Shown one piece after another: positions 2,878 through 50,030 of a stretch of DNA of 64,000 nucleotides. The notes beneath the pieces were generated by a model. The model was given only the letters and a program-made list of their open reading frames with translations, had not been told where the DNA came from and made no database searches. Numbering within the stretch: the first letter of the stretch is position 1; each line of letters starts with the position of its first letter. A program made the position numbers and the translations under genes. Source of the stretch: Octopus sinensis (Eukaryota); the NCBI RefSeq assembly GCF_006345805.1, contig NC_043002.1, positions 73,408,001-73,472,000 of the forward strand. The letters run 5' to 3'.

Positions 2878-2950
2878 ATGACTTCAATCATGCAGTTCGC
2901 AGCCATTTTCGCGCTTCTTGGCGCCATTCTGTACCTTCCAAGTTGCCACG
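2878..2950 (+). CDS. Gene 1 exon 1: signal peptide MTSIMQFAAIFALLGAILYLPSCH(+G, phase 1)
   Basis: ATG, a hydrophobic core and a small-residue cleavage region, then donor CACG|gtgggt. Phase 1 joins in frame to exon 5146 (G+CA = Ala). Confidence 0.8.
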
Positions 2951-3099
2951 GTGGGTATATTATGATGATGACCAATGCCATGTTCTTATTTGTTATGCAA
3001 ACCGATTTTAGTAATAATCTCTAATCAAGTACCTAAAATCTTCATAGAACATATGATTTTATACATACTTTTCATTACGTACATATACATATATATATG

Positions 3100-3131
<32 letters not shown>

Positions 3132-3178
3132 ATATGCGTGTATGTACGTATGTATGTATGTATACATGTATATATATA

Positions 3179-3242
<64 letters not shown>

Positions 3243-3289
3243 ATATATATATATATATAAATACATGTTTGTATGTATGTATATACTTT

Positions 3290-3644
3290 TTACTCTCTTT
3301 TACTTGTTTCAGTCATGTGACTGTAGCCATGCTGGAGCACAGACTTTAGTTGAGCAAATCGACCCCAGGACTTATTCTTTGTAAACCTAGTACTTATTCT
3401 ATCGGTCTCTTTTGCCGGTTGTTAAGCGATGTTGGGGAGACAAACACAGACACACATATATATATGTATATATATACCTATTTACGACGGGCTTCTTTCA
3501 GTTTCCGTATACCAAATCCGCTTACAAGGCTTTGGTTGGCCCGAGGCTATAGTAGAAGACACTTGACCAAGGTGTCACGCAATGGAACTGAACACGGAGC
3601 CAAGTGGTTCGTAAGCAAGCTACTTACCACACAGCCACTCCTAC
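3290..3644 (-). mobile_element. SINE family A (tRNA-derived, internal microsatellite) in gene 1 intron 1
   Basis: Reverse complement of the full copy at 17831-18292: head GTAGGAGTGGCTGTGTGGTAAG, B-box-like GGTTCCGTGTTCAGTTCC, tail CAGTCACATGACTGAAACAAGTAAAAG. Confidence 0.85.
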
Positions 3645-3659
3645 ATATATGTATGAACG

Positions 3660-3721
<62 letters not shown>

Positions 3722-3899
3722 AATATATATATATATATATAATATTATATTATATATTATATGTGTGTGCGTGTATGTGTGTATGTATGTTTTATATATG
3801 TGTATATATAGGTGTGTGCATATACATATTTTACATATATATATATGTGTGTGTGTATAGGTATCTATCTATACACACAGACACACACACACAGACAGA

Positions 3900-3953
<54 letters not shown>

Positions 3954-4638
3954 AAATAAAGATATAATCAAAAAATGATTATATCACTAGCCTAGTGCGT
4001 AACAGTGACCGTATAAGTAAAATTAATTTTTTTAAAACATATTTATAAAGTATAATTATAATTAAGGGCTGCTGGATGTGACCAGCGGCTTACACTAGAA
4101 GTAGATGCCAAATACCAACAACTCACTTAAGAACATATTTTAAGATATGTTCTTTATATTCAACCACAGGTCGAATGAGCGAGTAAATATGCAAACAATT
4201 TTCGTATAGCTCTATACCAAGAGATTTCATGCTCGGCGCTTCTTAGGGACCCATGCTATTGCGAAATAGTCGTTGAACCTATGCTAGTTTCATCTATCCT
4301 TTTGACAGGTTTTGTTTTAAATCCTGCTGTGTTTCTAGCAACTCTCTTCAGCCAGCAAGCTTAGTTGGAGTGCCAGTTTAGTCGAGGTCGACCCGACTAT
4401 GCAGCAGGTTGTACTGGACCCCATGTTACCAGGAGCACTCATGAATGACCTCACAAGTAACCTGGTATAAAATATAGAGACAAAATCGACTGGTACCTTC
4501 TTTATTGACCTCGAAATGATGAAAGCCCTAGCTGGCTTTGGTGGAGCACATGGGGATAAATCAAATGCAAAAGATTCTCTCGGATGTTCTATCGATTCTG
4601 CTAATTTACCATCTTTAAATGTTTTCCTTTAGAATATA

Positions 4639-5033
4639 CTAGCAGTATCGCCCGGCGTTGCTCGGGTTTGTAAGGGAAATAACTATATAAGCATTTTTAG
4701 AGATGTAAAGTATAATAGCCATCTCAATATGGCTAACCACAAAGGGGGGTGTTACTGTAGCTTTTTACGTTCTGAGATTTAATAATTAAGTTTTAGAGAG
4801 TTACTTCCCTTATATATGCCAAAAATGCATTAAAAATGGGAAAACTTAATGGTAATTTTTTTTTTAAATCGTAGACTCATCGTAGACGCGCGCTAATACC
4901 CAGAAGGGCTCGATATGAATCATGACTATAAGATACCCGGTTTTGGTTAAACTGCACCGCAAAATGTGGGAGTAGTTAGGAATCTAAATCGTAGGAGACA
5001 GACAGCACACAACCTCACTTTTATATATAAAGA
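4639..5033 (-). mobile_element. Non-autonomous Helitron
   Basis: On the minus strand it starts TC and ends CTAG, is inserted between A and T, and has a subterminal hairpin cccggcgttgctcggg. It shares its termini with 56776-57167. Confidence 0.7.
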
Positions 5034-5145
5034 TTTCATTCAAACTTCTTACACGTCATTTAGTATTTTTTCTTCTTTCCAATTTTGTTTTTGAGTTATC
5101 TGATTATATAAAATGATTAACAAAATGTTGCTTACTCTTCTTCAG

Positions 5146-5190
5146 CATCTGCCTTACACTCATCTGCGATGAGGCAACTCGTGGCTACAG
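5146..5190 (+). CDS. Gene 1 exon 2 (45 nt): (A)SALHSSAMRQLVAT(+G), pro-region
   Basis: Acceptor cttactcttcttcag|, donor ACAG|gtaagt, phase 1/1, in frame with both neighbouring exons. Confidence 0.85.
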
Positions 5191-5286
5191 GTAAGTTTTG
5201 TTTAAGATGTGTTGTTAATACAACGCGTTAATACATGATCATAGATGCATTCATCCTCAACAACCCCATGAAACATATATAGTTTA

Positions 5287-6014
5287 CTAGCATTATGACC
5301 CGTCGTTGCGGGTCATAGTGCTAGTGCATGTATATATGTGTACATATATGTGTACATAATACATGTACATCTATATATATACATCTACACATAAAATACA
5401 AAATACAAAGTTATATCGTGATATCGCTAGTGATAACAATACTCAAAATATATAACAGACTGGAATTGTAGGCCCCGTCTCTTGCAATTTCTATCAATTG
5501 TATCTTGTGCTCCCTCAAGTATAGAAGTGTGGCCACAATCTAGCCTACCTCTACTTCTGGAGGGACATTTTTAATTTTTATCCGGGACGTCCTACGTCCC
5601 AGATATAAAGGTAAAAATAAAATATTTCCACTTTGCAAGGTTCGAGTCGAGTAATTTTATTTTATTTTTAATTTATTCCCATTCATGTGAAACTACTTAT
5701 TCAAGTTCAAGTCATTGATGCAATTTTATACCAATTGCTATTTTTACTTTTAATTATGTTACGATTTAATTTAGTTTGCTTTTAATTATTACTTACTACA
5801 TATAATTCAATTGTTATTATTATCTCTAATTATTATTGTTAAAGTGAAAGTATCTGACATAAAATAGAGAAATATTTTTGTTTCACTTTTAACACGTAAT
5901 ACTGAAATAGTGGAGAAGACATGATATTGCTATGAAACCCCATGGACCCTAAGTAAGGCATGTGTAAAATTTGAATAAAATTGGTTGTGTAGTTCTCAAG
6001 TTTTAGGGAAACAC

Positions 6015-6049
<35 letters not shown>

Positions 6050-6077
6050 CACATTCTCAGTTTTATATATATAGAGA
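5287..6077 (-). mobile_element. Non-autonomous Helitron
   Basis: A|CTAG...GA|T on the plus strand, a 16-bp terminal hairpin CTAGCATTATGACCCG/CGGGTCATAGTGCTAG, and a (CAGA)n tract near the 5' TC end. Confidence 0.7.
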
Positions 6078-6326
6078 TATTTGCAGTGTTACCTTTGCAG
6101 ACTACAAAAATGTCGAACTGGTACCTTTCCCTCGATTGCGGATGAAACCAACTGAAACTTCACTTTCCAGAAACTTGAAAAAGTAGTTTATTACAGCCAG
6201 ACCATATACGATGCACTGTTGAAGTAAATGCTGCCCGCTGGCCTTTTCAGAAATGACCTAAAAGACGTTCACCGTTTGAGATATCTTCTCACTCACTCAT
6301 TAAAATCGCTGAGGCAACTTATCGGT

Positions 6327-6629
6327 TTATTTTATTTATTTATGCGCCGTTTTCAAGCCTAGCCAGGCTCACGGGCCCGGTTTCCCGGTTTCTATGGCGT
6401 ATGTGTTCCCCCCAGCTGGACGGGACGCCAGTACATCGCAGCGTTACTCAAGAAACAGGAAGAAAGAGTGCGAGAATGTTGGGGCGAAAGAGTACAACAA
6501 GGGTTGCCACCAACCCCTGCCGGAGCCTCGTGGAGCTTTAGGTGTTTTCGCTCAATAAACACACATAACGTCCGGTCTGGGAATCGAAATCGCGAGTCCG
6601 CTGCCCTAACCACTTGGCCATTGCGCCTT
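6327..6629 (-). mobile_element. SINE family B, full length
   Basis: Reverse complement of 21698-22010, with a tRNA-like head (TGGCCAAGTGG A-box, TTTCGATTCC B-box) and a (TAAA)n tail. Confidence 0.85.
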
Positions 6630-8071
6630 CACAACTTATCGGTTGCTGATATGATATTAAGGGGTCTCTGTGATGAATGATAGAAATCTTCTATTTTAAC
6701 CTGACCGTTTGCTATTGCATCAGCATAAACACTAAAAACAGTTAAACTTAGATTTCAAATTAAAACTAAAACTCACATTAGCTGTCTGATATAGCAACTT
6801 GAAAAGACACCAGTTTGCTGACAAAATTGTTCACGATAGCTAATCCAACACCAGCTTAGCTGGTGCAATATCCTCCTTGCTAACCAACAGAAGCTGTTGT
6901 TTTGCTTATGTAACTTACCCTATCCTCCCAGTCACTTTTGTGTCAGTGCTGTGATATCTATACTATAGTACATTACTTCCTTAACAATCGCAGTTCTTCG
7001 TTTTTGGCTCCCCATATGATAGTGGAAACGTTGAAAAATACAGCCTATGGTTATAGAAACACAACGAAACATAACTAAGACGCTGTTTTCGTCAATTACA
7101 ATAACTAAAGCTATTCTGACCATCCGGGGACTATCAATTTGACACATCTTTCATTAAGAAGACACAACCAATTCTTGCTTTTGATGCTATAGTACGTTAC
7201 TCAGAAATGAACAATGTCAATCATCTGTGAAGATAGGGTAATCACCATGCAGATTTTAATCTGTTAATCACGATATTCCGCACTATAACATCATTTTGTA
7301 ATACAATCAAGTTTCCTAGTTTTGTCATTGAGAGAGACGGTTGCATCTATACTTACTTTAAGTACCGCCTATTGTTCTTATATCGTATTGATATAATGTT
7401 AAATGTTATATTGCTCCAGCAATATTTATAAATTACCGTTGTCTTTAAGTGTTTATTCGTCACTCGCGTTGCGTAATTTATAGCTTCGGGTTTTGGTAGA
7501 CGTGTGAAAAGAACAAATTATTGACGGGATAGTAATTAGGTTTGACAATATTTATAATATTTAAAAAATAGAAACGTTTACACCGATAATTTAGTTCTAC
7601 AGATGCAATGCTTAGACACATTGTTAGTGTTGTATCCTGGAATCACTGGGTGTTTTGTGTCTTAAAACATACTACATCACCCAGGCGATCCGACCCAGGT
7701 TAATCAAGACTCGGTTATGTCTACCATGTAACATTCTGCTGACATCGATGATCATCCCATTTCAGTCAGAGCCATCTAGACGCTTTAGCAGAAGCCTCTA
7801 CGCTGTTCTTTATGGATTTTCTTCCGCTTATTTCTGTTATGCTCTGGTCCCCACAAGCGATACTCATGAAACAACCTGTGATCCTTCAACTGCCAACTTT
7901 CTGTGATAGACAGCTGGTTCTACACCAATTCTTGTGACAATCTTCGATTAACTCCTGCTACTTAAACTTATCCTGTTTGTTAACTATAACGAATTATGTC
8001 ACACCCGTAAAAATGTATGTTTGAACCCAAACCCGATAATTACAGACTGTTTTTCTTCATTTCATATATAG

Positions 8072-8277
8072 ATGCTGAGCCCCAAGTTAATCCTATAGCT
8101 GTCATTGAAGGAGCAGGCACCGTTCTGGATGTCCTTGATAAAGGTAGAGAATTTTTCAAAAATGTAAAGACAACAGATTTCATGAAAACCAAAGTAATTC
8201 CCTATCACTGTGACTTAGCTCCAAGTCTTGGAAAACTGGATGTAGAAGCGTTTAAATCAATGGACCACCATTTAAAG
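8072..8277 (+). CDS. Gene 1 exon 3: DAEPQVNPIAVIEGAGTVLDVLDKGREFFKNVK...IPYHCDLAPSLGKLDVEAFKSMDHHLK
   Basis: Acceptor ttcatatatag|, donor AAG|gtaaaa, phase 1/0. Clear homology to exon 38608-38795. Confidence 0.9.
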
Positions 8278-8549
8278 GTAAAAAAATTCGTCTTATCTAC
8301 TAGACGTTACATTTTCTAAATTGTTATTTTTAGCTGGAAAATAATTCACATTTCTATTGAGTAGCATAATGATAGTCAAATGAAAGAAGTACGCTGTGAT
8401 TTTGTTATAACATTTGATTTAACATTATGACCAAGAAAATACCTCTTGCTCTTCTAAACTTAAAATACGCACGGATGAGTCCGACTATACTGAAATTCAT
8501 TAATCTACATTGAAGCCCTTTACATACTGACATATGGATGATTTTACAT

Positions 8550-8584
<35 letters not shown>

Positions 8585-9457
8585 TCATTTCAAAATGTAA
8601 CCACATGTGGATCGTTGGCGACTTTTTCCCTTCGTCTTCCTTTTCTCTTGGACTTTGCTTTGTCTCCTGTTTCTGAAGAAGAGCTTTGCTCAAAACGTAA
8701 AACTACCTTTCTTTCCTTCTCTGAGCATCTGCTAATACTTTGCATGTACCATGTCCACGCGTTGTTGTATTTTTCTTGTGTTTTTTCTTCGTTTTTTTTT
8801 TTTTTTACTGGGAATTAATTATGTTATACATGTATATATATATCTTCAGTTGAAATTGTGAATTTAAACTTGGTAAAGTCCCCAAGATGACTAAAGAACT
8901 AAAACTGAAGATATTAAAGTTTTAAAATTTACTAAAAGATGATCTTTTGTTTGTTCGAACAGAGAAAACTGTAGTATTCCTAGAATAAAAAGGACCTTTA
9001 CATTTTCGAATACTCAGGGAGAAAGGAAAGGATAGGTATTCACGGAAGTGAATACCTATCCTTTTGTAGTTTTTAAAACTGATTGTGTGTGCGTTCGAAA
9101 TCTGTAGATATGTAAGTTTCTTAACTTATTTTGAGGTAAATTTTAAATACTCACAGGAAATTGTAGATATTCCAGTTTTTGAGAGTTATCTTTTCCTTGT
9201 GCTGCTGGGGTGTATAAGAGTTGCTGTATCTTCGGCTGCTGACTGGTCAGACTAGCGAAGAACACGTCCAGCCTCTGCCAAGGTTGGCGCTCTTATTATT
9301 ATTATCATCATCATTATTATTATTATTATTATGTCTCTTTATCACAGGTTTTGTTGGATATCCTGGAGTCTTACATGCGTAGCGGGTTGGCCACCTGCAG
9401 CCTACGATACCATACTATCTATTCTTTCCAGCTATCTAATACTTTCCTCATTATTAT

Positions 9458-9551
<94 letters not shown>

Positions 9552-9889
9552 TTGGAAACATCTTTCAGTTTCCATCTACAAATCCACTCAGAAGGCTTTG
9601 GTCGGCCCGTGGCTATATTAGAAGGCACTTTCCCAAGGTGCCACGCAGTTGGACCGAACCTGAAGCCATGTGGTTGGGAAGCAATCTTTTTATCACAAAA
9701 CCGAAAATATTGATTTCTCTCGTTGACACAATGTCACTGAAACACTGATTTTTTTAGACGCAATGGAAAACTATGTAAAGGAAAATTGATGGCTGCTGTA
9801 AAGTCTCCTATTGTTGGTTATTTTTTTATTGGCTCCTGGCAAAGGAAAGACAAATATTAATTGTTGATGCTGTTCATTATATTGCTTAG

Positions 9890-10090
9890 GTTTTGATTGG
9901 AACAACGAAATATAAACTAGAAAAGTTGATCCGAGAAGAAGGCAAATCAAATGTAAAATTCGAACGCTACATGTCTGCTATGCTGCAAAATCATTTTGCT
10001 GAGAAAAAAGAAAATGGTTATGAATATAGAAATAAGCTTTTGAATTTTGAATATAAAGGAATTTCAACAGGACGTGACCAGCAAAATGTG
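9890..10090 (+). CDS. Gene 1 exon 4: VLIGTTKYKLEK...FERYMSAMLQNH...GRDQQNV (67 aa)
   Basis: Acceptor attgcttag|, donor GTG|gtaaga, 201 nt, phase 0/0, open frame. Confidence 0.88.
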
Positions 10091-10861
10091 GTAAGATTCC
10101 TATGAAATATTATCAAACTTTAAAATGCATTAATTTTGTCAGCGCATCTACTATGTAATACCATGCAGCAGTTTATTTACCAATTGAAATTATTCGAAGC
10201 CCTTCAAAATTGCTAGGAATCAAAATCTTACTACCAAAAGACAAATGAAGGAGGTGGGAGTGAGATGACAGAAAAACATTTCAAAGTTCACCATAAAACA
10301 AAATATTGTGATAGTGAATAAAGTGATTAAGTAGTAATTTAACAACCATCCAGTTTCACGATTTGAAAAGCAAAAACTTACTTGACTATTATATGCTATG
10401 TAAATTTAAGGCGTTGTTAAAAGACATTACTGTAAGCCCCAGTACAGCATCCTCAATGATAATGTAAAATCATAAGGACATATGTATGAGTGTGTGCGCC
10501 TGTATTAATAGTTTGTGATCTTAAAACTGCATTACACAAAGTTTCACAGACGCAAAAAATGTCTCACTCTTCAGACGATTTCGATTTAATAATGAGGCAG
10601 CTGGGAATTCTAAGAAAAACTGGACGACACATAAAAACTGTGCCTCTTAATTAGTTCAGTTCATACAACATAGGACTGTTGGGCGTCTGCTAGGTGCTGT
10701 AACAGCTGCTCGTTGAAGAGTAACTTTGATGCAAAAGATACGAGTACTCTCCCTTGTATACAATTTCAGTAGGTTTTTTATAACATTTCAGAAAAGTCAT
10801 GCTTGTGCTTACAGCTATGGTTTAAAATTACCTAATATTACCTAAAATTACCAAATCAGTG

Positions 10862-11156
10862 ATGACAGCTCCATCGAGATTAGTGTGTTCGTTAAGAGAT
10901 ACTGTGGGCTGACTTCAAGGGAAAATTCACCCAGTATATGTACTTTTTCAATTCCAAGGAAAGAGAAACCGCTGCCTCCTTATTTTGTCTAAAGAGTCTG
11001 AGACAAAAGAAATGAGCGGCGAAGAATAAGTTGGAGTATACATAAGACGCCTCCTTATTTGTCTTCCTTGAGAAACATTGCTCTACCATCGCCAGATTTG
11101 GAAAGTGACTTGGTCTGAGTTGACGTTTAGAAACTAATACTATTCCCAAACTGTTT
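10862..11156 (+). pseudogene. Decayed THAP-domain remnant (DNA transposon relic) in gene 1 intron 4
   Basis: Stitching across frameshifts and stops gives MTAPSRLVCS..CGLTSRENSPSICTFSIP...K*AAKNK...SLFV.LEKHCS...RLETNTIPKLF, following the THAP order C-C-F-P-W-C-H-F-AVPT. Confidence 0.45.
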
Positions 11157-11821
11157 CATCATGCAAGAGAGACGATATCCATTTAAATATAAATGTATAG
11201 AGATATGGTGACTTTTATCTTAATTTGTGATAGCATTATATAATACAACGTGTCAAAGACTTTTGTCGTACGTCTACAACGTTTTCATTGACTATTCCAC
11301 TTCAACTGTTGTGAATTAGCTGTTTACCCAAAAGCAACAAAGAAATTCTACAATTAAAAAAAACAAAACATTTAGCTGAAACAAAATATCACACATGCGC
11401 AAATTCAAGTATATCTCAAAAATATGGATATAGGAATGATATTCGAGGACTTGCATATCACAGGCATACTCCGTCTAGCAGTTCTTCTCCAAGAAGACAG
11501 CTTCTCAGAAGTAAAGAATGACTGTTATAATAAATGCATTTATGTATATTATGATACTTTGAGAAATATCTTTAGTTTTAAATTAGGTTTGCTTTGAACA
11601 TTACTTGAAATGCAGCAGAGAGTTATATGAATTGAAATTTTCTTTAGATTAACTTTCCTTTCTAGACAACAGCGCTAATGCCAAGGCACTGCTAAACTGA
11701 TTCTCTGTCACAGCCATGAAGAACTGCCTTTGTCTCGATAGCATTGACAAAAAAAGAACTTTTATTAATTAACTAACGACACCAGTTGCCTCCATCGAAA
11801 CAACGATATATATATATATAT

Positions 11822-11936
<115 letters not shown>

Positions 11937-12931
11937 AAACTAAGCGTAACTTCCCCGCTTCCTTTTCTCGACCCACTTCGAAGCAGCCTATGAATGGATC
12001 GCAGTATCCTGGCTAAATCTTGGCGGCAGTGGTGTTTCAGAAACAAACGGTGATTCTAGGCCTACAGAAGACAGATCACTCCGTCTAGGATTTTGCCTTT
12101 AGCGTTATCTTCATCGGTAGCCTCCAAGATAACCGATGTTCCCACAGACGCTCGAGATCCTTTGATTGTATTACTAATTTCGACATGTCGGGAGCATCCC
12201 CAGCTCTGAAACTGTACCATAACGCATGATATTCTTTCGGGTTGATCTACCTTATATTCGCTTTAATATTCGGCTTATACACGAACCCATGCGAAAAGCC
12301 GTACCAATTTGGAAGGAACCGTTGTCTAGCTTGGTGCCAAACCGGGATATCGGGAAGCAACTGAGCCATGCAACGATCCGTGCTCACGTGCAGTAACCAA
12401 CCCTGCAAAATAGTATTGATTTTGTGCCTGCAAACTCAGCCACCACTTCGAACTAAACTGCTATTTTATCCCTATTTTTGTTACCGGTTTAGTCTTTACA
12501 CCAAAACGAGACGTCCATTCCTTCAAAAGAAGCAGCACATGCTAAGAACCTCGAGAATACTCTAGTATTCTAAAGGGCCCCCTAAACAAATGGTGCTGTA
12601 GCAATTACTAGCGAGGTGTATGCAGGCAAAACGATCAGCAGATTCTTAAATATTTCTCTTTTATTGGTTGGATGGGTTATAATAATCTGGTGTCGAAGAA
12701 ATAAATATTAAATTTGACTAGTTAAATTAAATTGTCAAGTTAAAAAGGATTAACTACTTCAATAAATAAAAAGAAAAAAAAAGTGAAAGTAGAACAGAAA
12801 ATAATATCCAGCCAGTAAGTTTCAATATGTTGTGGAATTGCGTCAGTGACGTCTACGACGGATATTTTTGACACATTACGATAAATCAAGAAATAAATCA
12901 AGGTGTGTATGTGTATATGTGTGTTTGTGTA

Positions 12932-12976
<45 letters not shown>

Positions 12977-13109
12977 TGTGTGTGCGCACATACAATTTGC
13001 GTTAATCTCTTACAATTTTTTTCATAATCTTAATGAATCCCTTTAAACAGAAAATGATCATATTGATAATTAAAGAAAGAAAAATAAACAATTTCTCGTT
13101 CATATATAG

Positions 13110-13328
13110 GCGATCAAAATCGATTCCTGGTTCAAAGAACTAATTAATGATTCGGATGTGCTTCAATCAACTAAAATCGAATTACAGGATTTTAAAAATA
13201 TTGCTTCTGCTACTGGTGTCGCCGTCGAAAGCTTTGCAACTCTGTTCTATGCCAACAAAAAGGTAACTCGTGATGTGGTGGATGTTGGAATTTTGAGATA
13301 TCCTGATCCAATGAAACCTTATTTTAAG
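13110..13328 (+). CDS. Gene 1 exon 5: AIKIDSWFKELINDSDVLQSTKIELQDFKNIASATG...VVDVGILRYPDPMKPYFK (73 aa)
   Basis: Acceptor ctcgttcatatatag|, donor AAG|gtaatt, 219 nt, phase 0/0. Shares D.LQ...ELQDF.NI.S with exon 42914-43105. Confidence 0.9.
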
Positions 13329-13974
13329 GTAATTATTTCTTATTGTTAATCCAGTATCTCTCTCTGATACTTATTGTATTTTTAACACACTAAGTACATA
13401 AGTGATGTTATCTCAGGACAAACACAGCAGCAACAGACCTACAGACAATGCGCATACATTTGTTTTGTTCTTGAACAGAATACATGGCTATTTTTTATTC
13501 TTTTAAACTACTTAAATCAAAACCCAATTCTTATCCTTAAGTTATAATCCCTTCATAATGACACATCATTGACGGTGTTTGCTACTTTGATATCCCTGAT
13601 GAGCACTCTGTCATTATTGCCGATTGCACTGAATCCATACGGAACATCTTATTGTTAGTCGGTTAAAATCTTATTTGTATAGAACATTCAAAACCTCTGG
13701 AGTAGGATTCAAGATTATTTTTCTATCACGATTCTAATTTCATCATGCAGAGTAGTATTGTAAGCTAAAACGAAAACCATTTTCTTTTGTTTTACACCTA
13801 AAAAAATGAAGAAAAAAAACGATTAATGAGATTGAATAACTTGGGCAGTCAGCTGGAATAATAAACAGAAAGGAATTCCCGCCAAACTTTTATCTGATAA
13901 AGAAAAATGTTTGGTTGATGTTAAAGAAATGAGATGTTAATGACATGCATTTGTTCCAGCAAACTTAAAAAGCA

Positions 13975-14270
13975 GTGGAGACACATGGCCTAGTGGTTAG
14001 AGCAGCGGACTCGCGGTCGAGGGATCGCAGGTTCCAATCTTAGACCAGGCGATGTCTGTGTTTATGAGCGAAACACCTAAGCTCCATGCGGTTCTTGGCG
14101 AACTTCTGCTGACTCTTTTGCCACAACTTTCTCTCACTCTTTCCTCCTGCATCTAGCAGCTCATCTGAGACGGACCGGCATCCCGTCCAGGTGGGGAACT
14201 TATACACAAATGAAACCGAGAAATCGGCGGCCCTTATGAGACAGGTACGGCTCGAGAAGGAACAAACAAC
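13975..14270 (+). mobile_element. SINE family B variant
   Basis: Head TGGCCTAGTGGTTAGAGCAGCGGACTCGCGGTCGAGGGATCGCAGGTTCCAATC and an internal gaccggcatcccgtccag motif. Confidence 0.75.
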
Positions 14271-16313
14271 AACTTAAAAAGCGAAGAAAACGTGTGATCT
14301 TGAGTCAAATTTAGAAAATATATTGAAATTAAGAAGCCACCAAATATGTGTTTCACTCGTGTGTTTTAGTACTGGCATCATTCGGAGTTTCTTAAAAGAA
14401 TTACCTCTTTATTAAGTTATTATTGCCTTTTTGAAACAGCAGGCTTCATTCTAATGAAACTCAGGTTTCATATTTGCAACATTAAATGGATAAATGTCAG
14501 ATATCTTTCTGGATAGGGCACTTTTCTCTGACAGACGGTCTCAGAAAGACCTGGCTCTCCCCCCACCCCCCGCCACACACACCTCTTAAAATAAAACATG
14601 TAGAAAGAAATCATCAAAAACTATCCTATGAGCTCCACATACATAAATCAATGTCCTTATCGTATTCAGACTTTAAGTTACTATTTTTATTATTAACTCA
14701 TAAAAAAAAATTCATTCATTATTTAACTCTTACCTTTTACAGTTTTTATCTTGTACACTGAAGCCACGGAGTTTGTACTTTTATATCTTTCACAGATATT
14801 TCTATTTCCGATATTCTGTTCAAGAACAATACAATTTTAAGACACTTTTCTCTCTGAATATTTCATGAAACTTATACAATCGCTTATTTACCAGATGATC
14901 AACTCTGATTTAGATCTTTTAATGTGTAAAACCAGTAATTATATCACATAAGTAATCTGGTGTCTCTGATATGTTTAATTCCTTTAGTACGCCCTAATAA
15001 CAAATATATCAATTTCATGAAGGTGACAAGTCTATTTCTAGTCGCTTTAATCTAACGTTTAAGTCCGCTATTCTGCCCCATCAATTCTCTAATCGCTAAT
15101 GTGAATATACATTTTAAAATTGCTTCCATTTCTTGTTTTTGAACATGTTATTTTATTATAAAGTTTTAAAATTTCAAACATCCAGTTTTAAATTTCAAAA
15201 AATCTACACTAAACAGACCTACACACAAGCGCGCTCGCGCTCACACACGCACACATACATACATGCGCACACACACTCACTTATACATACATACATTTGT
15301 AGAATAAATTTAATGCGCAATGTCGTCATCCTATAGATCGTGATCCTATGAATATCAACTGATGAAATAAATATATTCATTTCATAAGTCCTGACTTTAC
15401 ATTGTACACACGTTTCTATATATTTTTCAGGGATTTCAATTTACTAGAACTAAGAACGGCGAATGTCTCTTATAACTTTCTTTGATTACTTAAATGGCTG
15501 CATATCTTAATAAAGAATATATTAGCACCTTCAAAACATGGCTCGAAGGCATATTCTTCTAGAGTCATATTTATGCTACTATCCAGCCCCCTAAAGTTCT
15601 TAAGCATAAGTAGATTTCGAATTTCAAAAGGACTGGTGATGCTCACATTACTTTCATAGAGAGTTAATATATATCTAAAGCATATAGCATTTGAAATATA
15701 GATTATATCGCGAATTCATACAGTTTCTTGACTTCGAATTCCATATAATTTCACTGTTTAAAAATGTTTTTATTTCACGCCCACTTTCTGGTTTCCATTC
15801 CTCATTTCATATGTAATTTTTGTGTGTGTGGTTTTTGTCGTTGTTGTTGTTGCTGTTTTGTGCAGCTCATTTATATTACACTAGCACTACATATGCTAGC
15901 GCATACATATGCAGCTGCGTGCGCGCGCACATACACGCGAGTACTGTCCAAATCTCCGACCAATCACATACAGCTAGCTGGCATTCAATTGGCGTATCAA
16001 GTTTCGGTCATTTTGATTGGGTTTTGGATAGAAAATTCACAAAAAAGTCACTTCTATTGATTTTTTAATGGTTTTGCGAAGTGACTGGGGAAATGTAATG
16101 ATGTGCACGACCACCCTTGGACGGTTTTGAATGACCATAGAAAATGCGAGCCCTCTAACTGAAAAATTGTGGATTTGTATAAAGGATACACACACGCACA
16201 CACATATACGCACACACACATACACGCACACACACATACACGCACACACACATACACGCACACACACACACATTTTGCCGTTTATATATATAGAGATTAC
16301 TGTCTCGTTTCAG

Positions 16314-16499
16314 TTATACCGTATCAGACTCTTCGCATACAGCGACCGAACACGCTATACATTTTATGAAGAGACATACAGTGGAATTGAAGGTACTTAC
16401 CATTCGCAGGGATTCGTACCGAGAAAAGATGTCATCGATGCAATCGCTCCCAATCGTTTCGACAAATTTGTTCAGAATGCATTAGATTCTTTGTTGTAA
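16314..16499 (+). CDS. Gene 1 exon 6 (terminal): LYRIRLFAYSDRTRYTFYEETYSGIEGTYHSQGFVPRKDVIDAIAPNRFDKFVQNALDSLL*
   Basis: Acceptor gtctcgtttcag|, phase 0, stop TAA at 16497-16499. The six exons sum to 930 nt = 309 aa + stop. Confidence 0.9.
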   Translation, partial: LYRIRLFAYSDRTRYTFYEETYSGIEGTYHSQGFVPRKDVIDAIAPNRFDKFVQNALDSLL

Positions 16500-34279: not shown

Positions 34280-34669
34280 TTTTCTGCTCTAGGCACAAGG
34301 CCCGAAATTTTGTGGGCGCGAGCAGTCGATTAGATCGAACCCAGTACGCAACTGGCACTTAATTTATCGACCCCGAAAGGATGAAAGGCAAAGTCGACCT
34401 AGGCGGAATTTGAACTCAGAACGTAAAGACGGACGAAATACCTATTTTTTTACTACCCACAAGGGGCTAAACGCAAGGGGGACAAACAAGGACAAACGGA
34501 TTAAGTCGATTACATCGACCCCAGCGCGTAACTGGTACTTGATTTATCGACCCCGATAGGATGAAAGGCAAAATCGACCTCGGCGGAATTTGAACTCAGA
34601 ACGTAACGGCAGACGGAAAACTGGTAAGCATTTCACCCGGCGTGCTAACGTTTCTGTCGGCTCGCCGCC
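34280..34669 (-). mobile_element. SINE family C copy just upstream of the candidate gene 2 start
   Basis: Same head and duplicated motif as the other family C copies. Confidence 0.82.
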
Positions 34670-34802: not shown

Positions 34803-35203
34803 GTAATTTATGAGAAAAATACCAGGTCTCTCGAGCTTATTTTTAAGCTTCAAAGTAAGGAAGATAAACGTAAACAATATCGTTTGCCTTATTCGACAAT
34901 GCAAATATGTTATGCTGCCAGCTAATATTCCCAGCCTTTCATATTCCTTTGCTTTCAATCATATTATTATATAAACCTAATTCCAGTATTTTTATATTTT
35001 TTTATTTTTATCTTCTGCAACGCGCTTTTGAAAGTTTTCAATGATTTTTTTCTGAGAAAACTGCAATGTGTTACCATTCAAATTGACAATAAGTCACAGA
35101 AAATGCTAGCTTAATAAAATCATTAAGTAGCCAAATGTTGAACTTGCGAACATGATAAATTGGAAAATATTTACATTTCTAGTGTATTTTTTCTGCTTTC
35201 CAG

Positions 35204-35212
35204 CTTTGCATG
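35204..35212 (+). CDS. Gene 2 micro-exon (9 nt, CTTTGCATG = xLH+G)
   Basis: Strong acceptor ttttttctgctttccag|, donor G|gtatgt, phase 1/1. Encodes LH, matching ALH of gene 1 exon 2 in the equivalent position. Confidence 0.65.
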
Positions 35213-35602: not shown

Positions 35603-36129
35603 TGCACTCACGCAAACACACATTCTTAAATATTTTCCATTAAATATTTTACCTCTTGTCTCCCTTAGAAATAAAAATCTTATGCACCCTGTTTTAACAG
35701 GGTTAATTGATCAACATTGTATAATTCTTACAAACGAAAGTGTTGAATATTATTTTGCTATAAGTTTCTTTTTATTCTCAACTGAGTTATGTAAGCATAT
35801 TCTGAACTGAGTTATGTATCTCTTGCTTTTTTCTTCTGTTCAAATGTTTTACTTCTCATAAATTACCTTCAATGCAAAGAAAACAAAACAATTTCACTTC
35901 CCTTAAGTAAGATCTAAATTAATAATCATTATTGTCGTTATTATTAAGGCACCAAGAAGGCGGCGAGCTGGCAGAATCGTTAGCACGCCTGGTGAAATGC
36001 TTAGTCTGCCGCAACGTTCTGAGTTCAAATTCCGCCGAGGTCGACGTTGCCTTTCATTCTTTCGGAGTCGATGAAATAAGTACCAGCTACGCACTAGAGT
36101 CGATGTAAATCGACTAGCCCCTTTACCTG

Positions 36130-37580
36130 GTGACCGTACCTCCCTCTCCAGGCTCACTTTCCTTTTCAAGTGGAATCTGAAAAAGTCAATGAGGCCTTGT
36201 CCAAAGAGGAAGGTACCCATCTTCAACCCTTTCAATGGTATCCACCACACAACCTCTTTTGTCATAGCCACCAGACAGAAAATTACCCCACCTCCCGACC
36301 AAAGGAAGGAGGCGGGGAGATCTTCACAATGGACTCGGACGATAGCCGGATCCGTCCTACACGTGACAATAACTGTTCGACAAAGATCCACAAGTCAGCA
36401 AAGCGCGGATACTGTACGAGAGCATGCAGAACGGTTACATTGTTCCGCGTGCATCTCGGAAAAGCCCGACTGACTGCACGCCTGTGCCTGTAGAGCTTAT
36501 TTTGAACCAGCAGCGTCCCCCGTAGCATTGCCAGGCCAAGTATTTCTGGAAGTTATGCATGGTTTCCGGCCCGAAAGTATTCCTCGACGTCCAGGACCTC
36601 TCTGAAAAGGTCGTTGCTCTTGCCCTTCACTAATCCCCTATAGAACTCCAAGATGGAACTTCCACCGACTGCATTTCCTGAGAGGCTGAGGACTGTGAGC
36701 ACTTAGAGACACTGTAGGTGTCAAGCACCCTGCCTCGGTCTACGTCTGATCCAACACTGTAGCTCCGTCAAGGAGACAAGGTGCGGAAAAGCGCGTTCAA
36801 CAAACAGTGACCACACCTACTCACCGTTAAGGTATTGCTGGAGCTCTCGCAGTCTCAGCGCATGTCTGCGCAGCCTCAGCCACGGCATGCCCAGTCCTCC
36901 ATGAAACGGGTGCTGACAGGAAGCGGAAGAGCAAACGCACCAGCCCGTTCAGCCACGAAGCGGGGCAAGGTACGTCATTCAGGCGGTAGTATATGACGGA
37001 TGCGATGTACTCATTCGCCTCCTCCGCCCGAACTTTCAGAGACAGCTTCCTCTCGGTCCATTTCTAGGCAAGACTGGCCGTCCTGTCTGTCACCTCGCCC
37101 CAGTTCTTGTCCGCTTGGAGATCCGGACTGAACCAGACCCTGAGCAACTTAACAGGTCCTTCCGTCCAACGCCCCACCAAGCTGTTGGTTGGCATCTGCC
37201 TGCCTCTCCAGTTGCCGAGCTGCAGGCCCACTGACTTCTTCTGGTTGATCATTGCTCCTGTCACTGCTTCCTATTCCCTTACGGTAGTGTCGACCATCTC
37301 GATTTCCGAGATGTCCGACTCTATCACGGTGGCGTCGTCCGTATACCCTGACACGAACCCTCTGCATCCCAGTTCACGTAGGATGCCCCTCGAAACATCC
37401 AGCTTCCAAAGTAATGGCTCAAGTGCCAGTATGTAGAGAAGGGGTCAGAGTGGGCATCCTTGATGGACCGAACGCGCGATACTAAACGAGAGGTGGTCAT
37501 TTACTTTGACCACCGAACAGATTTCGCTGTACATTGCGGCGATCCAGCCTCTGAAAACGAGGTCGAAACCAGCCATCTAT
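36130..37580 (-). mobile_element. Tx1/L1-clade LINE fragment (RT to 3' end), degraded
   Basis: QGCPL*PLLYILALEPLL...GYTDDATVI...GAMINQKKSVGLQLG..VKLLRVWF. A related 3' end lies at about 59560-59840. Confidence 0.75.
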
Positions 37581-37891
37581 GCCACGTTCTTTACTTACTC
37601 TCTCTATAAAGTATCGCGTGAGGTGGAGGTTATCGTGTATAGTTCTGCAGGGAATAGCGGAAGTCTACGCATCACCCACCTGTCTGTCAACGACAAGCGC
37701 CAAACTCTTTGCTGACACCTTGGCCAAAATTTTGTATTCTGTATTTAGCTGAGTTACCGGCCTAAAGTTATCAACAATGTTCCCCTTGTTCCTGGTGTAC
37801 TCTTATCAGACGGGTAGTCATGATGGGTATACTGGGCTTCGTATATTTTTACCCCAGTGTCACTTTGATGGCGTGCGCTGCCCTCTCACTC

Positions 37892-38607: not shown

Positions 38608-38795
38608 ATACAGACATGTCATTTTTCACAGTTGGACCTATCAAAGATGTTATTCAAAAAGGGAGGCAACTATTTTTGGATCAAGGTGCTCAAAATATAG
38701 TAAAATCTGGTACAGTTCCTTACAACAGTAGTTTGGCAGTCAGTTATGGGAAGTTAGACAAAGAAAACTTCATAATGATGGGTCATTATGTACAG
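38608..38795 (+). CDS. Gene 2 exon: DTDMSFFTVGPIKDVIQKGRQLF...VPYNSSLAVSYGKLDKENFIMMGHYVQ (63 aa)
   Basis: Acceptor tttcattctttag|, donor CAG|gtttgt, phase 1/0. Aligns to gene 1 exon 3 (DV..KGR..F, PY...LA.S.GKLD.E.F..M.H). Confidence 0.88.
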
Positions 38796-38851: not shown

Positions 38852-38899
38852 TAATTAATTAATTAATTCGTTTATTGGCCACAAAGGCTGACAAAAATA

Positions 38900-39123
38900 A
38901 TTGTACAACAGAACAATTAAACAAAAGGTTTAATGGGCATAGATTCGACGTCAGGCACAATAACAGTAGTTCGACAGAACTTGCTGAACATTTCGTTTCA
39001 AGCGGCTGCAATTTTGAAGAAGACTTGAAAGTGCATATTCTCAGAAAATATTCTGCACTTCTCAGAATGTATGAGGAGAAATATGTTTGCGGGTTATTAA
39101 TATCAAATTTATACAAAATTTAA
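38900..39123 (+). mobile_element. PLE GIY-YIG fragment in a gene 2 intron
   Basis: TTEQLNKRFNGHRFDVRHN..TELAEHF....CNFEEDLKVHIL. Confidence 0.6.
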
Positions 39124-42079: not shown

Positions 42080-42244
42080 GTGATGATGGTTATATGCAAG
42101 GATATTCTTCTGGGTTACAGCGAAGAAAATCCAATTCAAATAAAAGATTTCATTCACCAAATGAAACATTCGGGGCTTCTCCAAGTCGCTGACAGAACGC
42201 AAATACAACAAATAAGCATTGATTTTCTAAGTCCTGACAAAATG
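42080..42244 (+). CDS. Gene 2 exon: VMMVICKDILLGYSEENPIQIKDFIHQMKHSGLLQVADRTQIQQISIDFLSPDKM (55 aa)
   Basis: Acceptor tttccttaattttag|, donor ATG|gtaagt, 165 nt, phase 0/0. Positional equivalent of gene 1 exon 4. Confidence 0.85.
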
Positions 42245-42913: not shown

Positions 42914-43105
42914 GCTGAAAGGCTACAAAACAGATATCAGCAGGATTTAGTGAAAAAGGAGGACATATTACAAGGTTTTGGACTGGAATTACAAGATTTT
43001 GCCAATATTATTTCTACTGCAGATACCGACGAAATTTTAAACAACCAGACTGTACTTGACATCAACTTGTTAGTACTTCCTGCGGACTTTGATGATCATT
43101 TGAAG
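42914..43105 (+). CDS. Gene 2 exon: AERLQNRYQQDLVKKEDILQGFGLELQDFANIIST...VLDINLLVLPADFDDHLK (64 aa)
   Basis: Acceptor tattgtttttaag|, donor AAG|gttagt, phase 0/0. Homologous to gene 1 exon 5. Confidence 0.87.
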
Positions 43106-44258: not shown

Positions 44259-44649
44259 TTTCTACTTAGGCACAAGGCCCGAAATTTTGGGGGAGGGGGC
44301 AATCGATTACATCGACCCCAGTGTGTAACTGGTACTTATTTAATCGACTCCGGAAGGATGAAAGGCAAAGTAGACCTCGGCGGAATTTGAACTCAGAACG
44401 TAGCCGCAGACGAAATACCTATTTCTTTACTACCCACAAGGGGCTAAACACAGAGAGGACAAACAAGGACAGACTTACGGATTAAGTCGATTATATCGAC
44501 ACTAGTGCGTAACTGGTACTTATTCAATCGACTCCGAAAGAATGAAAAGCAAAGTCGACCTCGGCGGAATTTGAACTCAGAACGCAGCGGCGGACAGAAT
44601 ACCACTTAGCATTTCGCCCGGCATGCTAACGGTTCTGCCAGCTCGCCGA
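44259..44649 (-). mobile_element. SINE family C with target-site duplication, in the last intron of gene 2
   Basis: Flanked by the direct repeat AGCATAGAGTCAT(T/G)TATT at about 44239 and 44653. Confidence 0.85.
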
Positions 44650-44768: not shown

Positions 44769-44969
44769 GTACACCACCTAGAATTTGAAATTCATAGACA
44801 ATCATATCATGCCCCAGGATTTGAAACAAACCAAAATTTCGTCAATGGTACATTTTACAGCATTGAGTTTGAACCGAATGAAGACGCAATCGATCAACAG
44901 AACCCGGAATCATATCAAGTGCCCGTAGTTAACATGTTAACTCATATGCCTTCCAAAGACGAACTATAA
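44769..44969 (+). CDS. Gene 2 terminal exon: VHHLEFEIHRQSYHAPGFETNQNFVNGTFYSIEFEPNEDAIDQQNPESYQVPVVNMLTHMPSKDEL*
   Basis: Acceptor ttttcttttcag|, 201-nt open frame missed by the ORF track, stop TAA 44967-44969. Aligns to gene 1 exon 6 (GT..S..F.P..D.ID...P......V.N.L). Confidence 0.88.
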   Translation, partial: VHHLEFEIHRQSYHAPGFETNQNFVNGTFYSIEFEPNEDAIDQQNPESYQVPVVNMLTHMPSKDEL

Positions 44970-44998
44970 ACTTTTTATAGAATATTTTTATTCTTCTT

Positions 44999-45086
<88 letters not shown>

Positions 45087-45087
<1 letters not shown>

Positions 45088-45504
45088 CTTTTCTTGTCTT
45101 TTTAGGAATATGAAATTACAAGGAGGAGAGGATTTCCAGTCCATTCGCTCCCGCCCCTTTTAGTCGCCTCTTATGCCACGCAGGGAATACAGCGACTGCA
45201 TTGTACCAGTCTCCCACCCCAGTCGCAGTGGGTTTGCTAGTTAACCCATAGCTGGGACCACTCCGGGCCAGAGCAGACCTGGCAACAGCAGTGGCTAAGT
45301 GGTGGTTCCACACTCCTCAAACCCTGAAATCAGAGCCCCAAGGTCCCAATACCGGATGTAGTTTATAGTTATACCCAAGCATAGAACAAGGCTCACCTTT
45401 TCGAACTAGAAAATGAATGGAATGACTCGTGTGTGTTTTGTTGTTGCTACCGACTCCTAAAAATGAGGATTAGGCCTGGGTATATAAAAATTTTATTATT
45501 ATTA

Positions 45505-45544
<40 letters not shown>

Positions 45545-46012
45545 TTATTATTATTATATTATTATTATTATTGTTGTTGTTGTTGTGTTGTTGTTGTTGT
45601 TGTTGTTGTCTTTTCTTGTCTTTTTAGGAATATGAAATTACAAGGAGGAGAGGATTTCCAGTCCATTCGCTCCCGCCCCTTTTAGTCGCCTCTTATGCCA
45701 CGCAGGGAATACAGCGACTGCATTGTACCAGTCTCCCACCCCAGTCGCAGTGGGTTTGCTAGTTAACCCATAGCTGGGACCACTCCGGGCCAGAGCAGAC
45801 CTGGCAACAGCAGTGGCTAAGTGGTGGTTCCACACTCCTCAAACCCTGAAATCAGAGCCCCAAGGTCCCAATACCGGATGTAGTTTATAGTTATACCCAA
45901 GCATAGAACAAGGCTCACCTTTTCGAACTAGAAAATGAATGGAATGACTCGTGTGTGTTTTGTTGTTGCTACCGACTCCTAAAAATGAGGATTAGGCCTG
46001 GGTATATAAAAA

Positions 46013-46022
<10 letters not shown>
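45087..46022. repeat. Apparently exact tandem duplication, 522-bp period, bounded by (TTA)n/(TTG)n
   Basis: Identical translations at 45116-45313 and 45638-45835 (offset 522). Confidence 0.9.
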
Positions 46023-46060
<38 letters not shown>

Positions 46061-46076
46061 CATCATCATCATCATC

Positions 46077-46116
<40 letters not shown>

Positions 46117-46129
46117 TATTATCATTGTC

Positions 46130-47000
46130 TTTGCACAGCTTCTAACATTGGAGATGCACTACGGTGTCAGCTATTCACTACCACAGAACTAAAGTAACAC
46201 CCCTTATTTTTCGAGCACCATCCGGAGTATTCGAGCGGTTCCAAGCAGTGCTCCACTCTTATTGCAGCCCCTATTTTTTCCATGCACTTCTGAAGATTTT
46301 TACGCACTCTTCCCAGGGCTCCGACAATTATTGGTACTACTATCACCTTTTTCGGCGACCACAACAGCTTAATCTCCCAAGCTCACCTGTCATATCTGTC
46401 GGCTTTTCTTTCTTCCTTATCGCATACCTTGTTGTTAGCTGGGCATGCTATATCTAAGATCGAGCATCGTTTGTTTTCGTTCTCAATTAACACTATGTCT
46501 GGTTTTCTATCCTATATCTCATGGTCGCACTGAATCATAAAATCCCATAGGATTATCATTTTCGATGATGCCTTCGGGTTTATGTTCGCACCAATTTTTT
46601 GCTCTGTGTAGTTAATACTTGTTGCCAAGTGTCCAATGGACAAGCCTTCCTATATTGTCGTGACGTGTTTTATATTCCTTCAGGGCTAGTGGCTGGTAAT
46701 ATGCCATACGGTTTCATCATTTTGTCCACAAATTCTGCACTTATCACTTTCTGATGTGTTGTCTATTCTGTATTTGATGTAATTCATTCTTAATGCTTGC
46801 TCTTGGGCAGCACAGATTAGATCCTCCGTTTCCGGTTTTAAATCACTTTTAGTCATCCATAACCATCCGTCATGTATTCGCTCTCGACTTGCACTCAGTT
46901 TGATAACAACACCCTGCGCATCGGTTTTATCAGGAGGCTCGGCCTCCAGATCCGTGAGAACCACAAATGTCACTGTTAGGATCGGATTAACACCCATAGT
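46130..47000 (-). mobile_element. R4/Dong-like (RLE-type) non-LTR retrotransposon 3' fragment
   Basis: LKPETEDLICAAQEQAL..CRICGQNDETVWHITS (zinc knuckle), RHD motif, VPIIVGALG. The 3' end abuts (TGA)n(TAA)n. Confidence 0.8.
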
Positions 47001-48151
47001 GACCCTAATGACTAAAAAGATTTTCCTGCCTCTAATTAACATATTTTTTTGTTTTCTTCCAACCACTTGAAGGTTTATCTTGCCCCAGTCCACTCAGCTG
47101 ACCAAAATGAGTCGTAGCTGTAATTTAAAGGGACCAGTCGTGTCGTATTCTGTGTGAGGGTGGATCTTCCTGGGAACTACGTTAACGGTATGCATGTCTG
47201 TCGAGTACTCAGCCACTTGCGAGTTAATTTTATCCTCGTGTGGTAATGAAAAGCGAAAGTGACATCCAATATTGCTATAGTTGTCTTTGATTTAACAATA
47301 TATCTATCTTTCAACTTTTCTTTCGATCTATGTATCTACTGTCTCTCTCACTTCCTCTGTGTTCCTCCTCTCACCGCTTCTGTCTATTATATATCCTTGA
47401 GTTCACTCGAAAAGTGAAACAGATGATATGGTAGAAGATACTCGTCCAAAATGTAATGCTTTAAGATTGAATTCGGAACCATGTGGTTACAAAACAAACT
47501 TCTTTACTATGTGGCAGCGGCAGTGCCCAACAAAATATTTAAAATTATATATACGAATTATTGTAATCACATTCATGAAATGCTGTAATATTTTTCTCTT
47601 AAATAAAACGTATTGACATTAGATAGAAAAATTTGTGATTGATTTCAACGATTTCTTCCCTTGTTTTGCATGGATTCGCCATTTTCTATCATGGACAAAG
47701 CTATCGCAATTTTTGACGATACGGAATTACTAGTAAATCATATGCGCGCGTCTATTGTGTGTGCATAAAATCCATACATGGTTTTAAACGGAAAAATTAC
47801 CCAACTCAGATGAACATCTATGTAAAATGGATCCTGATTAATCTAAATATGAATTTTTTCTTCTAATTCAAGATCTCCTTTGGCTACAACCCAACAAAAA
47901 TGTATTCAGTGAAACCTTTTTCTATACAAAAGATTCGAACAAGAATGTGATCATTTTTTCTCCATATTTCCTTTTCACTTGTACTATATACGTGAATCTT
48001 ATGAATACGCACACCAATATATCTATGTGCTTTCAGAAAAATTATAGTATGAAGACATTTCTACTGTAATTTTATTTCCATACATGTAAATACATAGAAT
48101 AAAACTCTTTTCCTCCTTATGTTAAAAATCTTGTTTTAATTACACTATATA

Positions 48152-49149: not shown

Positions 49150-50030
49150 TGTGGATTTTTCGATTATTTTCCACTTTATGGTATGCGATGTTGCGTTAGA
49201 TTTTAAACTCCATACGTGTGTAGCCAACTTAGTAGCCTTGCCTTTATCCATATGTCGAAAGGAAGCTATTTTATTAGTATAGCAATTTTTAAATTACCCT
49301 TCACATAGTCCGACATAGTTCTTCTTAACTATTGTGTTATCATTTAGCGTTGCAGTAACTTCTGCCTCATATACGATGGATTTAATCATACAACGCTGGT
49401 CAAGTGGACAGGTTCCTAGATCTTGACAATTACAATTAGATTTAGGCTTTTGGTGTTGGCCTAGTGTAGTGATATTGTTCATATTGGGGCAGCAGCTATA
49501 TGATAATTTCACAGATTGAAAGTTTCCTATACCCGTGATTTTCCTGAAATTGTCTAGCAGAGTTAGTTTTTACGTTAAGGGAAAAGGGAGGAGCGAACCA
49601 ATAAATTTCCCTTAGTCTCGTTGTGAGATTTAAAAATAGTAAATTTCTTTTTGGTCTATTATTATTATTCTGATTAATATTAAAGGAGTCATATACTAAT
49701 AAATCTTTAAAGACGTATTTGGCTTGGGCATTGTTATAGTAGGGGGCTGCTTTGTCGAAAATTTCTTTAGAGAAAGAGTGGTTAGACACGCTGTTGATGA
49801 TATGAGCTATCAGGTTTTTGAATATTACAGGAGGGTGACAAGACAGTTTATGTATATAGGCGTCTCTTTGTCTTTGTATTAAATACATTGAGATCTAAGT
49901 ACCCATCTCACGACGTTGGTCTATACCAAACCGACGGTTTGGGTATTTCCCATGGCTGTGTTAGTCACACCCTTGATAAATTTAGAAAGCAATTCATTTC
50001 TAGCTTCTGTCAATGAGGCTTTAAAATCAC
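49150..50030 (-). mobile_element. Penelope-like element fragment (RT thumb plus GIY-YIG)
   Basis: YIHKLSCHPPVIFKNL..SNHSFSKEIFDKAAPYYN..WFAPPFSLNVKTN and CNCQDLGTCPLDQRCMIKSIVYEAEV...NYVGLCEG. Confidence 0.82.

Follow-up and report, generated by a model that had tools for sequence, protein, structure and literature searches.

A KDEL-tailed tandem paralog in Octopus sinensis, a putative endoplasmic reticulum resident in an unnamed eukaryotic protein family

Soluble residents of the endoplasmic reticulum (ER), such as those of the BiP, PDI and calreticulin class, combine an N-terminal signal-type sequence, a flexible tail with KDEL at its C-terminus, an acidic isoelectric point (pI) and the lack of a membrane span. 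One copy of a secretory family can be re-addressed when a four-residue tag appears or disappears at its C-terminus, as in rodents, where liver carboxylesterases carry HXEL tails and the serum form is secreted. An ER-retrieval motif (HDEL) also occurs in a toxin context, in the yeast K28 killer toxin, a secretory-pathway protein in which an additional terminal residue covers the motif until a late processing step. Retrieval by the KDEL receptor is itself an established pathway, and toxins that exploit this receptor exist (PMC9220330). Here, we analyse a stretch of 64,000 nucleotides of Octopus sinensis DNA (assembly GCF_006345805.1, contig NC_043002.1, positions 73,408,001 to 73,472,000 of the forward strand; hereafter the window), in which two tandem paralogs, gene 1 and gene 2, lie on the same strand, and we focus on gene 2, the product of which ends in KDEL. 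The first 26.5 kb of the window are 100% identical to the O. sinensis chromosome record CM016864.1 (assembly GCA_006345805.1), in agreement with this placement. The gene 2 product shares the terminal KDEL, the acidic pI and the lack of a membrane span with the BiP, PDI and calreticulin class and has a signal-peptide-like N-terminus, but its fold and family are unrelated, it carries no chaperone or enzyme motif and it is known here from its sequence and a structural model. The logic of the rodent carboxylesterases is the same, although the family is different and the tagged octopus copy has also strongly diverged in its core. Unlike that of K28, the motif of gene 2 forms the C-terminus itself and is unmasked. 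We consider that gene 2 probably encodes a soluble ER resident kept in place by KDEL-receptor retrieval, and that this is the best explanation of its features.

The gene 2 model was guided by the O. bimaculoides protein LOC106883826 (P0001) and its splice sites were read directly. It has five exons, every intron is GT-AG and the 268-residue product is identical to O. sinensis XP_029638281.1 (LOC115213445), annotated as 'uncharacterized protein'; gene 2 is thus already annotated, and its KDEL tag makes it one more case of a well-known kind. The terminal exon (Table 1) follows an acceptor made of a polypyrimidine tract and AG (tccttttcttttcag/GTACAC, where the slash marks the junction). From 44769, one frame is open for 66 codons; this frame 0 translates as VHHLEFEIHRQSYHAPGFETNQNFVNGTFYSIEFEPNEDAIDQQNPESYQVPVVNMLTHMPSKDEL up to the stop, its end reading ...NMLTHMPSKDEL and then TAA. 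As the sequence-only reading had claimed, the protein ends in MPSKDEL directly before the stop and extends five residues beyond the aligned end of gene 1, which both the exon itself and the protein alignment bear out; the exon was indeed missing from the mechanical list of open reading frames (ORFs), because its frame contains no early ATG, GTG or TTG. A tblastn search of the window with the KDEL exon revealed no paralogous exon, and the motif is the sole KDEL in any frame of the window. In both gene 2 and its O. bimaculoides ortholog, the C-terminal tetrapeptide fits the PROSITE ER-targeting pattern [KRHQSA]-[DENQ]-E-L at the extreme end. We estimate from ordinary amino-acid frequencies that an exact C-terminal KDEL would arise by chance in ~2e-5 of proteins, so that for a secretory protein with an exact and accessible KDEL, true ER residence is far likelier than coincidence.

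The tail also stands out within the family. The common C-terminus is a helix ending in ...EAEALF, and among ~160 family sequences inspected a KDEL-like end was only found in the two gene 2 orthologs; by alignment, the gene 2 tail is a lineage-specific extension of five residues in place of the usual ending. The AlphaFold2 (AF2) model of mature gene 2 (predicted local distance difference test, pLDDT, 83.9; predicted template modelling score, pTM, 0.81) places a helix at residues 229-241 and then the last seven residues, MPSKDEL, as coil. Judging from this model, the tag would be accessible on a free tail.

Other features of gene 2 point to the secretory pathway. The peptide encoded by exon 1 has a Lys at position 5 followed by a hydrophobic core of 11-14 residues, with a Kyte-Doolittle 19-residue window of 1.53, under the level of a membrane anchor; the core is too short and too weakly hydrophobic to act as one. 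This peptide is identical to that of the O. bimaculoides ortholog at 20/20 residues (tblastn). A similar signal-type start on its own exon is found in all octopod paralogs with a readable N-terminus (two others are N-terminally incomplete), and most fungal relatives have no such N-terminus. Outside of the N-terminus, a Kyte-Doolittle scan of gene 2 found no segment that reaches the hydrophobicity expected of a membrane span, the top 19-residue window (1.47) being located on a helix of the AF2 model. By hydropathy and by the coil of its modelled tail, gene 2 therefore has the soluble body and the accessible C-terminus of KDEL-retrieved residents. We infer signal-peptide function, glycosylation and actual ER residence from these sequence features.

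The locus is maintained in a second species. The O. bimaculoides ortholog (LOC106883826) is syntenic, being placed downstream of the gene 1 ortholog in the same orientation and with the same five exons; the two gene 2 proteins are 90% identical, the three N-glycosylation sequons are all kept and the O. bimaculoides protein also ends in MPSKDEL. The tail codons read AAA GAC GAA CTA TAA in O. sinensis and AAA GAT GAA CTA TAA in O. bimaculoides, a synonymous Asp change inside the motif, and both residues immediately upstream of MPSKDEL differ between the two species. In a third octopod, a 1131-bp contig (L003, Logan SRR11869391) carries a gene 2-type exon 2 in which the first sequon is kept as NST; it is 82% identical to gene 2 in protein and 81% in DNA, intron included, and stops short of the KDEL exon. 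Between O. sinensis and O. bimaculoides, the ratio of non-synonymous to synonymous substitution rates (dN/dS) is 0.36 for gene 2 (dS 0.13; Fisher p = 0.002 for dN < dS) and 0.59 for gene 1 (dS 0.17; p = 0.027), and the gene 2 coding sequence is 94% identical vs ~84% for intron 4. On these comparisons, gene 2 is a constrained, functional gene under purifying selection, tighter than gene 1. Altogether, the exact KDEL, the free tail, the signal-type exon 1, the conserved sequons and the dN/dS of 0.36 support the part of the sequence-only reading in which gene 2 looks like an ER-retained paralog, beside a gene without a retention signal.

We propose the following sequence of events. The octopod family would have gained a separate first exon for a signal sequence, by which its members enter the secretory pathway. 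Gene 2 would be a divergent tandem paralog in this unnamed eukaryotic family of proteins of ~270-300 residues; in its lineage, most conserved positions would have been lost, the protein would have turned acidic and gained two further sequons (three against the single one of gene 1), and a five-residue C-terminal extension ending in KDEL would have been added. The protein is predicted to be translocated into the ER and glycosylated. Molecules that escape to the cis-Golgi would be bound by the KDEL receptor through their exposed tail and returned in COPI (coat protein complex I) vesicles. At steady state, gene 2 would thus be found in the ER lumen, and gene 1 and the other untagged paralogs would be exported. 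Most simply, the ER role of gene 2 would be a new function unrelated to its neighbour gene 1.

Several points weigh against ER residence. By eye, no canonical -3/-1 cleavage site is seen in gene 2 (FCFPALH/DTD), where gene 1 has a canonical context (CHA/SA); neither AATAAA nor ATTAAA was found within 1.5 kb past the gene 2 stop; and an alternative terminal exon may yield a secreted gene 2 isoform. Moreover, conservation of KDEL was compared in one close species only (dS ~0.13), and at 90% identity any four residues would stay unchanged by chance in about two of three cases, so that its presence in O. bimaculoides, real as it is, constitutes a weak test and adds little. This last point also feeds the best-surviving alternative, which we nevertheless regard as unlikely: that the KDEL is incidental or ineffective and that gene 2 is secreted like its paralogs, for instance because retrieval is saturated, the tail is trimmed or an alternative last exon is used. 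Some KDEL proteins do escape retention, and the tag is absent from all other family members. This alternative must however accommodate the low chance of an exact match given above, a lineage-specific extension that is free in the model, and a motif in which the one nucleotide change is synonymous within a gene under purifying selection.

The two genes of the window are clearly homologous (Table 1). Their proteins align end to end with 23% identity (E = 6e-21), gene 2 exon 2 is paralogous to the gene 1 exon at 8072-8277 (E = 6.5e-12), and exon order and intron phases are common to both genes, apart from a mini-exon of gene 1. This 45-nt, phase 1 mini-exon (ASALHSSAMRQLVAT; 5146-5190, plus strand) lies between the signal-peptide exon and exon 3 of gene 1 and has no counterpart in gene 2. 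The gene 1 terminal exon was detectable only via fungal and O. bimaculoides relatives; its protein ends in NALDSLL before the stop, without KDEL.

Table 1. Exon structure of gene 2 and gene 1, in positions of the window
Feature	Position	Strand	Remarks
Gene 2 exon 1	35152..35212	+	Encodes MINWKIFTFLVYFFCFPALH and the first base of the next codon; donor G/gtatgt; signal-peptide-like
Gene 2 exon 2	38608..38795	+	NSS sequon, AAC AGT AGT at 38724-38732
Gene 2 exon 3	42080..42244	+	82% identity in tblastn with P0001; splice sites ttttag/GTG ... ATG/gtaagt
Gene 2 exon 4	42914..43105	+	NQT sequon at 43043-43051; lacks ~10 residues and the LRYPD..PYFK signature
Gene 2 exon 5 (terminal)	44769..44969	+	NGT sequon at 44844-44852; KDEL at 44955-44966; TAA stop at 44967-44969
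Gene 1 (LOC115213392, 309 aa)	2878..16499	+	Spliced translation identical to P0004
Gene 1 exons (n = 6)	2878-2950, 5146-5190, 8072-8277, 9890-10090, 13110-13328, 16314-16499	+	

The differences between the two proteins that the sequence-only reading had listed were for the most part found in the spliced products. Gene 2 carries three sequons (NSS at residue 60, NQT at residue 182 and NGT at residue 228) and gene 1 only one (NDS at residue 188). Gene 2 is also more acidic at its C-terminus, with a net charge of the last exon of -9 vs 0 in gene 1, and over the whole mature protein (pI 4.6 vs 8.6). The YPDP..PYFK motif is absent from gene 2 as stated, together with ~10 residues ahead of it, the LRYPD..PYFK signature being shared by gene 1 and the wider family. 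The accompanying statement that gene 2 lacks an actinoporin-like helix start did not hold: both models start with a helix and neither matches actinoporin. Likeness to actinoporins is limited to small size and possible membrane activity, and was rejected on three grounds: no Pfam match, no actinoporin in the top 50 fold matches of either model, and a helix-rich alpha/beta architecture rather than a beta-sandwich.

We also placed both genes in their wider family. An exhaustive profile search gave 397 cluster representatives at a cut-off of E <= 1e-3 (66 at E <= 1e-30), most of them 240-310 residues long. Its named members, every one annotated as hypothetical, come from Basidiomycota (Trametes, Pilatotrama, Leucocoprinus, Agrocybe), Ascomycota (Podospora), Mortierellomycota (Dissophora), a fern (Ceratopteris), a green alga (Acetabularia) and cephalopods (Octopus sinensis, O. 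bimaculoides, O. vulgaris, Argonauta hians and Acanthosepion pharaonis). This patchy distribution, noted from relatives P0003, P0006, P0015, P0016, P0021, P0023, P0026, P0043 and P0095, could stem from ancient horizontal transfer or from many losses. Gene 1, gene 2 and nine relatives matched no Pfam model, the Cyt-toxin family (PF01338) included, for which there was no hit at E <= 1; the family profile had no match among the sequences of the Protein Data Bank (PDB), and a literature search found no publication on the family. Some members have unusual architectures: in a metagenomic protein (P0031), LDL-receptor class A repeats are combined with the family domain; P0023 from Acetabularia carries a signal peptide and, besides the family domain, an N-terminal domain of ~220 residues; and the O. 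vulgaris model P0011, which looks chimeric, fuses two exons of another paralog to repeated non-family sequence that by eye resembles a retroelement.

Octopods have at least 7 or 8 paralogs, several on one chromosome and some with neighbouring gene numbers. At least six are present in O. sinensis (LOC115213392, 115213445, 115212730, 115213512, 115213384 and 115210937), all but 115210937 on one 120-Mb chromosome record; those of O. bimaculoides include LOC106883823, 26, 29 and 30, all four with neighbouring gene numbers, and the three copies for which a contig is on record share one chromosome record. At the 42 alignment positions with at least 70% conservation in the family, gene 1 keeps 37/42, the other octopod paralogs 23-38/42 and gene 2 only 16/42, its losses including the near-invariant Trp, Asp, Arg and Pro of the WF...D.D and LRYPD..PYFK.YRI motifs; by this count, no other member has diverged as far as gene 2. 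It is about equidistant from every paralog (20-25% identity, similar BLAST scores), and the closest to gene 1 among the paralogs compared is LOC106883830 (46%). In a rough neighbour-joining tree, gene 2 forms a very long branch near the octopod copies and does not group specifically with gene 1; from this placement and its equal distance to all paralogs, gene 2 is not specifically sister to gene 1. Nor does acidity single out an ER partner, since other octopod paralogs are acidic too (pI 4.9-5.9).

The predicted fold gives a hint of what the family may do. The gene 1 and gene 2 models were searched separately against the PDB with Foldseek: the top matches were Cyt1Aa, Cyt2Aa, Cyt2Ba, Evf and volvatoxin A2 for gene 2 (n = 9) and exclusively Cyt toxins for gene 1 (n = 7). 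These Cyt-type matches had E values of 2e-4 to 7e-3, probabilities of 0.80-0.99, TM-scores of 0.22-0.39 and root mean square deviations of 8-14 A, the next class, Bet v 1/START-like, reaching a probability of at most 0.35. Both models consist of helical layers around a sheet, the last three strands of which are long, in an order compatible with the Cyt-type fold. They share with the proteins of Bacillus thuringiensis (Cyt toxins), Erwinia (Evf) and a fungus (volvatoxin A2, an already known fungal member of this fold) a single alpha/beta domain with helical layers and a sheet with three long C-terminal strands, but the octopus proteins are ~50-80 residues longer, have 6-15% sequence identity to them and have no Pfam match. 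The models thus weakly suggest a three-layer alpha/beta fold resembling Cyt, Evf and volvatoxin; given the low TM-scores, the Cyt-type fold is a lead rather than a demonstrated assignment.

We also examined the proposal that duplication had split the pair into a toxin/self-protection-like two-gene system. In this proposal, gene 2 would be an ER chaperone, inhibitor or storage partner that keeps a membrane-active gene 1 product from harming the cell in which it is made; we find this improbable. The two genes are neighbours in the same orientation, with synteny kept in two species, their charges are opposite, Cyt-type cytolysins are the best fold match for both models, and the loss by gene 2 of 26/42 conserved positions under purifying selection would fit a non-catalytic or regulatory derivative. 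Against this, the paralogs, at least 7 or 8 in octopods with several on one chromosome, form an array rather than a dedicated pair, gene 2 is equidistant from all of them and its acidity is not exclusive to it; gene 1-type proteins occur without a gene 2-type partner in fungi, the fern, the alga, Argonauta and Sepia; and the one hint of a putative gene 1 toxicity is a weak fold match (TM 0.25-0.39). KDEL itself occurs in one lineage only among these octopod paralogs, which is not the pattern of a dedicated, co-occurring pair. The two-gene system was therefore not supported: the multi-copy array, a gene 2 that is not specifically sister to gene 1 and gene 1 types that lack the partner elsewhere all count against it. 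A broader version, in which cephalopods have an expanded secreted form of a Cyt-fold-like family otherwise known from fungi, a fern and an alga and one Octopus copy has become an acidic glycosylated ER partner that holds or neutralises membrane-active paralogs during their biosynthesis, strikes us as improbable as well. A chaperone or antidote role of gene 2 is pure speculation.

It is very unlikely that gene 2 is a decaying or unexpressed duplicate whose features have no function. Its divergence, with 16/42 conserved positions kept, and the lack of a canonical poly(A) signal nearby would agree with decay, but in O. sinensis and O. bimaculoides alike the frame is open and every splice site is preserved, conservation is much higher in exons than in introns, dN/dS is well below one at p = 0.002 and RefSeq has coding models for both. 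[quoted passage not shown]

The window is AT-rich animal DNA with abundant microsatellites and short interspersed repeats. Genes 1 and 2 are the two family copies in these 64 kb, and no third copy was found across the window. One short interspersed repeat, which reads ...RNWYLIYRPRKDERQSRPRRNLNSER... in one frame, is present in many copies on both strands (for example at 31526-31865, 34410-34559, 44321-44605, 17497-17724 and 22079-22461); lying at many sites, it creates spurious similarity between the gene 1 and gene 2 regions. Directly past the gene 2 stop, the segment 44983-46125 holds three alike microsatellite blocks (44983-45087, 45493-45609 and 46015-46125), mostly (TTA/TAT)n and then (TTG)n, the third continuing into (ATC)n. 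These blocks and an identical pair of minus-strand ORFs of 65 residues (45116-45313 and 45638-45835) make up a tandem unit of ~522 bp. The segments at ~35900-37700 (in gene 2 intron 1), 38875-39123, 46686-47093 and 49294-49888 include a GC-rich block (50% GC vs ~35% elsewhere) and several ORFs that resemble retroelement fragments by eye; a Pfam search with these retroelement-looking ORFs of the introns and downstream region gave no convincing match.

If the KDEL works, putative ER residence of gene 2 would be a clean natural case of re-addressing by duplication, in which a tail of five residues turns a copy from an exported family into an ER resident, the core of which then drifts toward a new role. 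The larger point is the unnamed family itself, with no Pfam model, no solved structure, a hint of a Cyt-type fold, a patchy spread and an expansion in octopods. The function of the exported copies would tell whether the ER copy serves as a safeguard or has an unrelated role; were gene 2 truly an ER partner that restrains membrane-active paralogs, it would represent an animal-encoded, paralog-derived safety device for pore-forming proteins.
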